Of a stretch of DNA of 64,000 nucleotides, positions 12,126 through 21,853 are shown one piece after another. Every line of letters starts with the position of its first letter. The stretch's first letter is position 1. Both the position numbers and the translations under genes were made by a program. The stretch is from positions 186,001-250,000 of IMG/VR virus record IMGVR_UViG_3300046692_000091. The stretch is one strand, 5' to 3'. The notes beneath the pieces were generated by a model, which ran no database searches, was not told the origin of the DNA, and saw nothing but the letters and a program-made list of their open reading frames with translations.

Positions 12126-13385
12126 TTAACCTTTTACGCAGAGAATTTGTTTGAGAGTATGGACGATGTCCACGAGTTGTTCTTGTGCAGACATTACGTC
12201 TTCGATGTTCTTGTAAGCTTTTGGTGTTTCATCGATGACAGAGATATCCTTACGACATTCTACACCAGCTGTATCACGGACATGATCTTCCAGGGTGAAT
12301 GTCTTAGCAGCCTGAGTACGGGACATGACTCGGCCAGCTCCGTGTGAACACGAGCAGAAAGAATCACGGTTACCTTTACCACGGACGATGAAAGACTTAG
12401 CGCCCATCGAACCAGGGATAATCCCGAGTGTACCTTTATCTGCGTTCACTGCACCCTTACGAGTTACCAGAACGTTGTTACCGAAGTGGCGTTCTTCTGA
12501 TACGTAGTTGTGGTGGCAGTTGATGGCCGACATATCGGAATCGATTGGCAGACCTAGAGTACGGTGGATAGCACCAAGAGTAGCATGCATCATGATCGAA
12601 CGGTTAAGTGCAGCGAAGCGTTGTGCCCAGGACACGGCTTCGATGTAGTCGTTGTAATATTGCGAACCTTCGGGGAGGTAAGCGAGATCACCATCTGGCA
12701 GATGAATGAAGAAACGTTTCATTTCTTCTTTTGCTTTCGAGATAAAGTAAGTACCGATTGCGTTACCGATACCACGAGAACCAGAGTGCAGCATCACCCA
12801 CACTTGATCGGATTCATCCAGACAGATCTCGATGAAGTGGTTACCTGTACCGAGAGTACCTACATGGTTCCATGCACGAGCTGCAGCTTTCGCCAACTTA
12901 GGATGACGTTCTACAATACGTTCCAGATGCTTACGCAGTTTCTCTGCTTCATCACGGATAGCTTGAGATTGGTGAGTGAACACGGATACCGTACCAAATG
13001 CACCACGATCGTTCTTCCCACCGTTGTCAGTACGGCCATGAGGCACTGAGGCTTCGATAGCGGCACGCAAATGGCCAAGAGAGGTCGGTAGTGCTGTGGA
13101 CTTAAAAGTAAGGCGCTGCGCAGCCATACCACAACCGATATCAACACCTACTGCGGCTGGAATGATTGCGCCTTTAGTAGCAACCACAGAACCCACTGTT
13201 GCACCTTTACCCAAGTGTACGTCGGGCATCACAGCAATGTGCGAATAGATGAATGGGAGGGCAGCAATGTTCTTGAGTTGAGAAATTGCTTCTTTCTCTA
13301 CTGGTACGCCAACGGTCCAGCCTTTGATTGGTTTAGAACCTGGTTCTACTGTATCACCAATCAGTTCAAATGTTTTCTGTTTCAT
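12126..13385 (-). CDS. rtcB: RtcB family 3'-phosphate RNA ligase
   Basis: Motifs MPDVHLGKGATVGSV, VGVDIGCG, GTLGTGNHFIE, MLHSGSRG, CHHNY, IPGSMG, SCSHGAGR, DETPKAYK. Confidence 0.97.
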   Translation of the reverse strand: MKQKTFELIGDTVEPGSKPIKGWTVGVPVEKEAISQLKNIAALPFIYSHIAVMPDVHLGKGATVGSVVATKGAIIPAAVGVDIGCGMAAQRLTFKSTALPTSLGHLRAAIEASVPHGRTDNGGKNDRGAFGTVSVFTHQSQAIRDEAEKLRKHLERIVERHPKLAKAAARAWNHVGTLGTGNHFIEICLDESDQVWVMLHSGSRGIGNAIGTYFISKAKEEMKRFFIHLPDGDLAYLPEGSQYYNDYIEAVSWAQRFAALNRSIMMHATLGAIHRTLGLPIDSDMSAINCHHNYVSEERHFGNNVLVTRKGAVNADKGTLGIIPGSMGAKSFIVRGKGNRDSFCSCSHGAGRVMSRTQAAKTFTLEDHVRDTAGVECRKDISVIDETPKAYKNIEDVMSAQEQLVDIVHTLKQILCVKG

Positions 13386-13449
13386 ATAAAGCCTCACGCG
13401 GATGGAAAGAGGAATTGTTACATACACTGACTTTGCCAGTATTATTAAA

Positions 13450-14245: not shown

Positions 14246-15130
14246 TTATTTCAGGAAAGTACCACAACTTGCTTGTACATCAGTACCAACGCGAGGAATT
14301 AGTTTTACACGTGCATTGGGTAATCGGCGTTTGATGTAACGATGTAAGTAATCGATATGGCCTTCTACTGGTTCACGAGAGTAATGCCCTTCTGGTGGAT
14401 TGTACCGAACGATGTTCCAATTAACCTCTAACTGATATCCATCGATCACATCCAGGATAGCTTTAACATCAGCAAGGTTATCATTTTCATGTTCAATGAA
14501 AGCGTAGTGGATCTTCGGAACTTTGCCTGTGTGCAGCTGCCAGTCTTTGAGGATTGCGAATGCATCTCGTGGGTAACCCGCTTTAGGTAACCAACGTTTA
14601 CGAAACCGATCATTCAATGAGTAGACCGAATAATAAATCTCGGGGTATACCTCTGGATCAGTGAACACCGATTCAAGTGACCGGCGACTAAACTCTTCTG
14701 GCATGATAGTAGATATCAGGAACTTTGATTCAAGTCCATATCTGGCTGCACGTTTCTTTAAGCCACGCAAGATCTCATCGGCATTACTTAGAAAGATCTT
14801 ATTAGCTAAAGGTTCGCCTCGTGCCATGAAGTTGAAATGGACCATCTTAGCTGGATGCTTGTCGGCATAGTATCGTAGGACTTCATCTGCTTGCTGCCAG
14901 AATTCTTCAATCGTGGTATCACGTAGTTTATTCTGACCTGTTGCAGTTAACCAGCACATCCGGCAAGCTTGCTTACAACCTGTCTGAGACGACAAGTAAA
15001 CAATGAAGTAGTCATCAACCCGACGTACATATCGTGCCTCTAGCATCCCTGGGTGATCTTCAAAGCGGTGTTCGAAGTTTACTGATTGATCGAGTTGGGA
15101 TACATGTTGTTTAAAGATTAGATTATCCAT
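14246..15130 (-). CDS. RlmN/Cfr-like radical SAM protein
   Basis: SSQTGCKQACRMC (CxxxCxxC), FMARGEPLAN (MGMGEP-like), C-terminal ASCG. Confidence 0.85.
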   Translation of the reverse strand: MDNLIFKQHVSQLDQSVNFEHRFEDHPGMLEARYVRRVDDYFIVYLSSQTGCKQACRMCWLTATGQNKLRDTTIEEFWQQADEVLRYYADKHPAKMVHFNFMARGEPLANKIFLSNADEILRGLKKRAARYGLESKFLISTIMPEEFSRRSLESVFTDPEVYPEIYYSVYSLNDRFRKRWLPKAGYPRDAFAILKDWQLHTGKVPKIHYAFIEHENDNLADVKAILDVIDGYQLEVNWNIVRYNPPEGHYSREPVEGHIDYLHRYIKRRLPNARVKLIPRVGTDVQASCGTFLK

Positions 15131-17668: not shown

Positions 17669-18343
17669 TTATTCGTGCGTAGTAGACAGCTCAGAGATAA
17701 TGCAGATCGAACCATCTTCAACCGGAGTGGTATCGGAGTAATCAACCTGATTGTAAACACCACCATGGAACTGGAAGGTTTCATATTTCCACGAACTATC
17801 TAGCTTCAGCACTGGGCAGACTGACTTACGACCTTGGCAAAGCACTGACGCCGATACGGAACCAGCAGCTGTGACATGTAAGCTAATCTTGAATGGTACA
17901 CCCAATGGAACGTCTTCTATTAGTGTAAAGTTGTTTATTAGTGCGTCATCGAAGTTAGCTCGGAAACCAGCTGTGATCTTCCCTTTATTCCAGAAGACTT
18001 TCAGTGGCGGAGTTGTAGCATCTTTGACATGGACTTGTGCAATTACCACTTTCTTAGCCGAGTTGACTTTAGTAACAGTCATCTCTTGGCGAGACCAGTG
18101 ATGTGCTGCGCTAGTAAGAGACCAATAAGCTGGTTCTTTCCATTCACAGCGTGTGCGATGTGTACTTTTGCTGGACGCCCCTAATGTGGGCGCAGAGAGT
18201 TGAATAGAACCGTCTTCCAATTGACTGACCACTTCTGGACATCTTACCAAGGCTTCCGAACCGAGGAGCTCCAATGCAACCGGATTCTCATCAGAGACCG
18301 GTAATGGAGTAGCAATCAAATAGTTACTGATATCAACGAACAT
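17669..18343 (-). CDS. polysaccharide lyase family 7 (alginate lyase-like)
   Basis: RTRCEWKE (RxExR-like), IAQVH (QIH-like) and FHGGVYNQ (YFKAGxYxQ-like) in the PL7 order. Confidence 0.85.
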   Translation of the reverse strand: MFVDISNYLIATPLPVSDENPVALELLGSEALVRCPEVVSQLEDGSIQLSAPTLGASSKSTHRTRCEWKEPAYWSLTSAAHHWSRQEMTVTKVNSAKKVVIAQVHVKDATTPPLKVFWNKGKITAGFRANFDDALINNFTLIEDVPLGVPFKISLHVTAAGSVSASVLCQGRKSVCPVLKLDSSWKYETFQFHGGVYNQVDYSDTTPVEDGSICIISELSTTHE

Positions 18344-18444: not shown

Positions 18445-18528
18445 GAAAGGGAACAGGAATCGAACCTGCGTTTCCGGCTTGGTACTTATGGTGGCCACCG
18501 GTGTCCTAGGCCGCTAGACGACCCCTCT
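18445..18528 (-). ncRNA. tRNA-like RNA (Glu-type body) with 18-nt anticodon loop
   Basis: AGAGGGG-TC-GTCT-AGCGGCCT-AGGAC-A-CCGGT-[18 nt]-GCCGG-AAAC-GCAGG-TTCGATT-CCTGT-TCCCTTT-C; no CCA. Confidence 0.7.
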
Positions 18529-21315: not shown

Positions 21316-21439
21316 TGAAACGTTTACCTAGACAGTTCCCTAATAACTGATTACCCTGCGCGTCAGGTCGTTCGTTTATTAGGTAGGCGTGTATGCGACG
21401 CCTCGTTTTAGTTCTGCTCCTAAGAGCCTTCTGTCTAGC

Positions 21440-21519
21440 ACGCCCCTACCGGATTTGAACCGATGACCGATCAACGTATGGTTACCGTCGATTGCTCTAC
21501 CTAGCTGAGCTAAGGGGCG
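21440..21519 (-). ncRNA. tRNA-like RNA (Ile2/Met-type body) with 7-bp anticodon stem and 9-nt loop
   Basis: CGCCCCT-TA-GCTC-AGCTAGGTA-GAGC-A-ATCGACG-GTAACCATA-CGTTGAT-CGGTC-ATCGG-TTCAAAT-CCGGT-AGGGGCG-T; no CCA. Confidence 0.75.
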
Positions 21520-21523
21520 ACAA

Positions 21524-21608: not shown

Positions 21609-21853
21609 GTATCAGCAGCAGCCGGTCCACCCGGTCATGAGGTTTTAACTCTTCTGTGCTGATAGTAAAACATTTGAAATTAGCTATGGAGAAAGGCGAC
21701 TCGTTTTATCTCCTGACTTGTACCCATGCACCCATTATTGATCCACTGGGCGACTCCTTTAGTGTGGATCGGGCTGTACCTTACCGTCGTTGTAAGCTAA
21801 TTTCAAAACTAACGAGGCAGTAGAAGTCCGAAGGACCAATACCACCTCTAAGA

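Follow-up and report, generated by a model that had tools for sequence, protein, structure and literature searches.

Introduction

The tRNA clusters of phages are usually seen as kits for codon supply or against nucleases, and an odd tRNA found there is recorded as "tRNA-OTHER" or as a pseudogene. In the MHV68 tRNA-miRNA chimeras and in MALAT1/mascRNA, a non-decoding tRNA shape is joined directly to a second functional RNA, and the tRNA-processing enzymes of the eukaryotic host are used. The two parts are separated at the discriminator, and CCA is added to the tRNA-like piece. In the case of the T-box, a loop base of the discriminator domain pairs with the tRNA 3' end NCCA in trans, and transcription is controlled. 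T-box and RNase P have been described as tRNA rulers (PMC4919913). Theta ribozymes, which are minimal HDV-like ribozymes, adjoin phage tRNAs and lie within 5 nt of the tRNA ends (PMC10879173). The stable RNAs species I and II of T4 (rnaC and rnaD) are located in the T4 tRNA cluster and are co-transcribed and processed with the tRNAs (PMC2330249).

We analyzed a stretch of 64,000 nt (the window), corresponding to positions 186001-250000 of a 314,814-bp IMG/VR phage record. The nearest named relatives of this phage were the jumbo Pseudomonas syringae phages Psa21 and D6. Its tRNA operon contained a non-canonical tRNA-like element (TLS) that ran directly into a structured domain. Like the theta ribozymes, this domain is a phage structured RNA of a tRNA cluster that starts no more than about 5 nt from the 3' end of a tRNA, a place for which a 3'-end role was proposed (PMC10879173). 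However, it has a four-way junction with a closing helix (P1) and not the nested double pseudoknot of HDV type, it gave no HDV-type match in Rfam, and it is about twice as long. Its upstream partner is the TLS, whereas theta ribozymes follow genuine tRNAs (Met, Leu or suppressor). T4 species I and II were similar to the window unit as small RNAs of a phage tRNA cluster, and species I ends in a T-arm/acceptor-like part, but they had no sequence or structure similarity to the unit and are not a TLS fused to a 3' domain. Homology with rnaC or rnaD was rejected, as the covariance model of the domain (R1, see below) reached only 6.8 bits at best in the T4 region. The direct joining of an apparently non-decoding tRNA shape to a second conserved RNA was shared with the MHV68 chimeras and MALAT1/mascRNA. 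Unlike in those systems, the discriminator was paired into the downstream domain, and the host is bacterial. As in the T-box, a loop base of the RNA covaried with the discriminator base through Watson-Crick pairing. In contrast to the T-box, the pairing was in cis, spanned 2 bp, involved N73 and a G instead of NCCA, and had no expression platform. No compared system shares the fold or the cis clamp.

The tRNA-like element and its locus

The tRNA operon was on the minus strand in the order His, Asp, Tyr, odd element, Asn, Asn, Trp, Leu, Leu, Ser, Thr. The parts of the odd element and the genes near it were as follows.

21440..21519, minus strand: TLS, 80 nt, the 5' module (from the sequence, the Rfam tRNA model, the fold, identity in a second sample and syntenic orthologues)
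21513-21519 with 21441-21447, minus strand: acceptor stem CGCCCCU/AGGGGCG, 7 perfect pairs
21494-21510, minus strand: D arm GCUC-AGCUAGGUA-GAGC
21470-21492, minus strand: central ("anticodon") arm AUCGACG-GUAACCAUA-CGUUGAU, 7 bp, 9-nt loop at 21477-21485
Minus strand: variable loop CGGUC
21448-21464, minus strand: T arm AUCGG-UUCAAAU-CCGGU
21440, minus strand: discriminator U, followed by GCU and not CCA
21520..21523, minus strand: spacer of 4 nt (UUGU) that separates the CCA encoded by tRNA-Tyr from the start of the TLS, with U at -1 (from the sequence)
12126-13427, minus strand: RtcB RNA ligase gene (428 bits), about 8 kb from the TLS, downstream and in the same orientation
14246-15130, minus strand: radical-SAM gene, annotated RlmN-like in Psa21, just downstream of the tRNA cluster and by RtcB
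17669-18343, minus strand: alginate-lyase gene (Pfam Alginate_lyase2, E = 6.5e-39) inside the tRNA cluster

The TLS scored 46.3 bits on the Rfam tRNA model (cut-off 29). The minimum free energy (MFE) fold returned the hairpin of 7 bp and 9 nt (z = -3.8), and none of 200 shuffles was as good. The first-pass annotation had described a 7-bp anticodon stem with a 9-nt loop, a perfect acceptor stem, discriminator T and no CCA, and all of this was confirmed from the sequence, the Rfam score and the fold. It had also assigned the body to the Ile2/Met type, in agreement with the closest sequences, which were phage tRNA-Met genes (72-79% identity). The acceptor stem of 7 bp, the D arm and the T arm were those of a canonical tRNA cloverleaf. 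The canonical anticodon stem of 5 bp, the loop of 7 nt, U33 and a purine at position 37 were not found, and U33 was absent in every register.

The TLS had 0 differences from the source contig. In a contig of about 96.5% identity from another sample and metagenome, positions 21440-21519 were unchanged and the flanks differed. The match to the source contig and the identical element in a second sample meant that the TLS was not an assembly artefact. Three program calls were rejected. The Thr(GGU) call of ARAGORN depended on a forced fold, in which the stem had a mismatch and the variable loop was inflated, and its intron-mode call, Tyr(GUA) with a 6-nt intron, had G at position 33. YrlA (Y RNA-like) was an artefact lying across two adjacent tRNAs, with 24 bits in Rfam against a cut-off of 69.

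U(-1) is preferred by RNase P, and the U at -1 of the TLS is the context expected for RNase P cleavage. RtcB was also encoded in Psa21, D6 and G001, at the same place as in the window phage. It was not found in two carriers of the unit, G002 and G003 (455-kb and 42-kb phages). The RtcB and radical-SAM genes looked like an RNA-repair and modification module tied to the tRNA operon. No CCA-adding enzyme was found in the phage genome, and T4-type Rnl1 was not found there in a search run without a positive control. Psa21 likewise had a lyase gene in its tRNA cluster, annotated as a polysaccharide lyase family 7 protein.

The 3' structured domain

In an alignment of three phages, the approximately 110 nt downstream of the TLS were far better conserved than the TLS itself. 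The helices of this region were as follows.

21327..21440, minus strand: 3' structured domain of 113-114 nt, with the shared discriminator counted in (from covariation, the covariance model and the MFE fold)
21431-21438 with 21328-21335, minus strand: P1, the closing helix
21416-21427, minus strand: P2 hairpin
21403-21415, minus strand: conserved joiner AGAACUAAAACGA
21386-21402, minus strand: P3 hairpin
21376-21383 with 21339-21346, minus strand: P4
21368-21375 and 21347-21354, minus strand: conserved 8+8 internal loop in the P4/P5 arm
21355-21367, minus strand: P5 hairpin

The domain had five helices, a four-way junction and many invariant unpaired purines. Among 34 distinct copies, 97.5% of the helix positions were paired, and compensatory (double) changes were present in 23 of the 29 pairs. 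None of 500 shuffles reached the observed values, and slid controls were only 28-51% paired (30-51% on the 34 copies). The alignment of these copies (A6) was fitted to the covariance model; an independent MAFFT alignment of 13 sequences (A4) agreed with it, with 98.1% of cells paired and double changes in 18 of 29 pairs. MAFFT misaligned P1 and P2 of one subgroup, and hence a subset alignment and a model-based realignment were used. The covariance model R1 gave 131.8 bits for the window domain and found a single copy in the genome of the phage. Folding of the 193-nt RNA of the window by energy alone returned the arm of the cloverleaf and all five helices (z = -4.0). The G-U pairs occurred on this strand only, which identified the structure as an RNA of the minus strand. 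In the second-sample contig, a compensatory change from A-U to G-C was observed in P4 (21379, 21343). The 3' domain is therefore a real structured RNA. It had no match in Rfam 15 even at E<=5, and it appears to be a new motif. It was also considered whether the variable joiner base forms a base triple with the first pair of P4, but this did not hold across the 34 sequences.

The junction between the two parts

P1 began 2 nt past the discriminator. The two bases left between the stems found partners in the loop of P3.

21396..21397, minus strand: P3-loop bases C21397 and G21396, in the pairs G21439 (+1)-C21397 and U21440-G21396, a 2-bp pseudoknot

Among the columns that do not pair with each other in the model, the discriminator and the third base of the P3 loop had the highest mutual information. 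Their pair was a standard one in 33 of 34 copies, through five pair types (UA 10, AU 9, CG 7, UG 6, GC 1, other 1). In the case of the second pair, G+1 was invariant and its partner was C in nearly every copy (GC 33, GU 1). Covariation of the discriminator with a base in the domain loop indicated that the acceptor end was locked in a pseudoknot. By this comparative evidence, the 3' end of the TLS is clamped by the domain and is not single-stranded, with a predicted pseudoknot of only 2 bp. CCA was encoded in 0 of 8 TLSs, compared to 63 of 65 ordinary tRNAs of the same loci. The free single-stranded 3' end with CCA of a canonical tRNA was thus absent from the TLS. The paired discriminator argues for a fused product and against separation of the TLS and the domain.

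Separation could also come about by self-cleavage. The 113-nt domain would then be a cis-acting ribozyme that cuts at or beside the discriminator and frees the TLS, as has been proposed for the theta ribozymes, and RtcB or host enzymes would handle the ends. RtcB ligates RNA ends that carry 2',3'-cyclic phosphate and 5'-OH, and in the jumbo phages its gene lies near the tRNA cluster. The domain starts one base after the acceptor stem, close to the position of theta ribozymes, at most 5 nt from tRNA ends (PMC10879173). The invariant G+1, the free identity of N-1 and the compact multi-helix fold with its invariant unpaired purines were also consistent with cleavage. However, the fold is not HDV-like, as the 5' strand next to the junction has its partner at the extreme 3' end (P1) and not in an internal strand, and no ribozyme family of Rfam matched at E<=5. 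N-1 and G+1 pair with adjacent loop bases, and this stacked geometry would be poor for in-line attack. In addition, RtcB was missing from two carriers, and the function of a freed TLS whose central arm is random would remain to be explained. We consider self-cleavage unlikely.

RNA-type sequencing runs gave matches to about 5% of the sequence words, all from conserved tRNA parts, and no public run with this sequence as RNA was found. The contigs built gave no RNA ends.

Distribution of the unit and variation of the central arm

Loci were retrieved with exact short conserved motifs from IMG/VR, metagenomes and bacterial genome contigs, and they were confirmed with R1. Since exact motifs were used, the invariance of the motifs is partly by construction and the diversity is under-sampled; each retrieval motif was still conserved in the loci obtained through a different motif. 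The 34 distinct domain copies were 111-119 nt long. Carriers were jumbo phages of about 240-320 kb, with Pseudomonas phages among them, a 455-kb megaphage and temperate-type phages of the 40-60-kb class (42-58 kb, including the isolate-derived record TPWB-08), together with a Phaeospirillum contig and a gammaproteobacterial MAG contig. The unit also occurred in marine, soil and wastewater viromes. In bacterial genomes, a 19-mer gave 19 loci, approximately the number expected by chance, and only L021 and L035 were real by R1. In the small phages, the unit was in the late region, either between lysis/Q-like and terminase genes or right after the gene for the large terminase subunit (TerL). A late position by terminase and lysis genes is the usual slot for phage tRNAs.

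A TLS preceded every copy with readable upstream sequence and ended exactly at the first base of the domain; one locus, which was truncated on the 5' side, and a few whose upstream region could not be parsed were outside this count. Eight of the TLSs passed the Rfam tRNA cut-off. Across about 30 lineages of unrelated phages, the acceptor stem, the D arm with GG and the T arm with a UUCRANY-type loop were kept. The length of the TLS ranged from 69 to 130 nt, and the difference was the central arm, which varied from a 13-nt hairpin (5-bp stem and triloop) up to branched inserts of about 70-90 nt. Among the copies, the arm length differed by -4 to +70 nt, and the window arm was 6 nt longer than a normal one. 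Loops of 3, 4, 6, 7, 8 and 9 nt were observed, and some copies had whole inserted domains.

The anticodon was not conserved among orthologues, as syntenic copies carried unrelated loops. The syntenic copy of D6, annotated "tRNA-OTHER", had an arm of about 9 bp with one mismatch and an 8-nt loop. That of Psa21 was unannotated and below the Rfam cut-off, with an 8-bp stem, a 7-nt loop and an acceptor mismatch. In the 317-kb relative L006, the TLS body and the domain were about 97% identical to those of the window, and the acceptor stem, D stem and T arm were identical letter for letter. The arm of L006 was an unrelated 17-nt sequence, and this comparison showed that the D loop evolves fast as well. 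Contigs from a wastewater run matched to the 3' edge of the arm and then continued with other cassettes. A 310-kb phage, L003, had two units (L003:2587-2767 and L003:3172-3358), one with a UUA triloop and the other with a GUAA tetraloop on a longer stem.

These data bear on three readings of the odd arm. The first-pass annotation had proposed frameshifting or quadruplet decoding, that is, a working tRNA whose expanded anticodon loop reads four- or five-base codons or shifts the frame. The near-perfect tRNA body and the CAU triplet in the loop would fit. As in the +1 suppressors of SufB2 type, the loop exceeds 7 nt, and +1 frameshifting is possible with expanded loops (10.1101/2020.12.31.424971; PMC9094753). 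However, the known suppressors have an 8-nt loop on a 5-bp stem, a free CCA and a conserved extended anticodon. None of these was found in the TLS, which has 9 nt on 7 bp, lacks U33, and carries no CCA although its neighbour tRNAs do. Its discriminator is base-paired, and neither the anticodon nor the loop size is conserved among orthologues. In addition, ORFs of at least 100 aa accounted for 85% of the window when the tRNA cluster was left out, and each of the three stop codons was in use. By this measure, the genes of the window phage read normally in the standard triplet code. Decoding of this kind by the window element is very improbable. Canonical-looking 7-nt loops were present in two members of the family (L006, CUAAUAA; L047, CUCUAAA), and some members may therefore decode. 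L047 (4890-5150, minus strand) was a TLS with a canonical CUA anticodon stem-loop and a very long extra arm. In the 455-kb phage, a separate tRNA(CUA) was located about 2 kb from the unit (L016:8442-8519; L035:5043-5120).

A splicing substrate had been suggested as well. The element would then be a pre-tRNA with a mini-intron, or a nuclease target, whose arm is rejoined by the phage RtcB (12126-13427, downstream, same orientation) to give a tRNA of Ile2/Met type. The type of the body and the 6-nt excess of the arm were compatible with this. The arm itself was not, as it is a perfect hairpin without bulges. No bulge-helix-bulge motif or group I intron was present, and no intron family of Rfam matched at E<=1. 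No removal of 6 nt yields a canonical loop, and the best attempt of ARAGORN has G33. The span of arm lengths, from -4 to +70 nt, leaves no common "mature" form, some carriers are without RtcB, and the 3' end would still be clamped and CCA-less. Splicing was not supported as an explanation, and we regard it as highly unlikely. With an RtcB gene by the tRNA cluster, some chemistry of the cut-and-rejoin kind could still have a place in the jumbo phages.

Degeneration in related phages had been named in the first-pass annotation as an outcome that would speak against its reading. This was true of the anticodon arm, which was hypervariable, but not of the tRNA shape, which was strictly kept. A decaying tRNA pseudogene that merely stands beside a conserved RNA would explain the fast evolution of the arm and the D loop, and the mismatched, low-scoring copy of Psa21. 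It would not explain why the acceptor, D and T arms are kept in about 30 lineages of unrelated phages, why the spacing to the domain is always exact and why the discriminator covaries with the domain. The TLS was also identical in the 96.5% relative with its changed flanks. There is very little reason to favour decay.

The leader of the TLS had U at -1 in 15 of 29 copies. The leader UUCAAU was common to the otherwise unrelated phages L001, L002, L007, L009, L018 and L042, which suggested that the conserved unit may start a few bases upstream of the cloverleaf. These leaders can be read in favour of a TLS that is a processing handle only. The host enzymes RNase P, at the 5' end, and an endonuclease acting after the discriminator would free the 113-nt domain to act alone, and the TLS would be a by-product. 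As expected for a handle, the central arm is unconstrained and the copies retain the upper half, which RNase P and RNase Z recognise, and MALAT1/mascRNA and the MHV68 tRNA-miRNA chimeras are precedents. In contrast, the discriminator covaries with the loop, which makes the junction an integral part of the domain fold, whereas a trailer meant for cutting would be expected to be single-stranded. The central arm also spoke against a mere handle in one subgroup. In TPWB-08 and L011-L015, the enlarged arm contained conserved blocks, which suggests that the TLS has a function of its own. A role as a handle only is doubtful.

In the TPWB-08-like loci L010-L015, these blocks were GGAGUAAUUACCC and CAACUAGC, inside a central insert of about 70 nt. 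Judging from their conservation, the "anticodon" domain itself seems to be under selection in this lineage.

Other structured RNAs near the unit

The interval between tRNA-Asp and tRNA-Tyr (21664-21807, minus strand) was a non-coding spacer of about 130 nt with more than 90% conservation in Psa21, D6, L006 and L019. Some compensatory changes were seen in its long closing helix, GAAAUUAGCU/AGCUAAUUUC, and one hairpin carried an insertion at its tip in L006. The spacer had the motif AUAAAACGAG in common with the 113-nt domain and gave no match to R1. The spacer probably represents a further structured RNA of this operon.

Just upstream of tRNA-Trp (18445-18528, minus strand), a further tRNA-like element was missed by ARAGORN and scored 36.1 bits in Rfam. 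Its anticodon stem had 5 bp and its loop about 18 nt; CCA was missing, and no 113-nt domain followed it. It occupied the place of tRNA-Ser(GCU) in Psa21 and D6. Another CCA-less tRNA-like element, the second of its locus, was observed at L045:1611-1850, with discriminator A and then GC. It was followed by a different region of about 150 nt with a long closing helix, containing GGGUAAUGA. This may be a second type of domain linked to a tRNA-like element. In a 42-kb temperate-type phage, a Proteo-phage-1 RNA (Rfam RF03044, 85.7 bits; L005:2494-2573) was located about 1.2 kb from the unit.

Discussion

Taken together, the comparative data make it likely that the odd tRNA does not decode and forms the tRNA-like 5' part of a phage RNA that has two parts and about 193 nt and is transcribed within the tRNA operon, a non-chargeable mimic joined to a functional domain. 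The TLS retains only the upper half and the elbow of a tRNA, namely the acceptor stem, the T arm and the D arm with GG. The central arm is a freely varying hairpin, of which the version with 7 bp and 9 nt is one of many. The encoded chain runs on without CCA into the five-helix domain of 113 nt. Its 5' end may be cut by RNase P, and the clamp and P1 would prevent trimming of the 3' end, addition of CCA and charging. The mature species and working form would then be a stable fused chimera of about 190 nt. The tRNA shape might serve processing, stability or docking, and the 3' domain would do the real work, either by binding a conserved host component or by acting in cis on the acceptor end. The sequence of the domain is conserved across phages of hosts with very different GC, which points to a conserved host target or to catalysis.

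Within this model of a fused mimic, our leading guess is that the non-chargeable tRNA mimic engages a host factor that recognises the elbow and the acceptor end of tRNA. The first-pass annotation had also offered a decoy. In the broad sense of a non-decoding tRNA look-alike, this fits the evidence, but it had gone unnoticed that a larger conserved RNA has the TLS as its 5' module. Anticodon nucleases are unlikely targets of such a decoy, since the central arm is the least conserved part. More tentatively, the domain could represent a new class of functional RNA that acts on, or by way of, a tRNA acceptor end held in cis. It might be a self-cleaving or end-modifying ribozyme, or a mimic RNA that blocks a host factor such as a tRNA-attacking defence enzyme. 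If this were true, the free variation of the central arm would mean either irrelevance or an arms race.

We know of no described case in which the upper half of a tRNA has its discriminator clamped by a conserved four-way-junction domain. No description was found in Rfam or in the searchable literature, and the IMG/VR catalogue of structured RNAs (PMC10690425) may list the motif as an unnamed candidate. As a TLS fused to a second RNA, the unit appears to be of a kind already known, and the 3' domain appears to be the new part.

These results have a consequence for annotation, since phage "tRNAs" that lack CCA and have aberrant arms may be modules of larger RNAs. The odd tRNA marks a widespread and strongly conserved two-part RNA, which offers a testable handle on phage tRNA mimicry beyond decoding.
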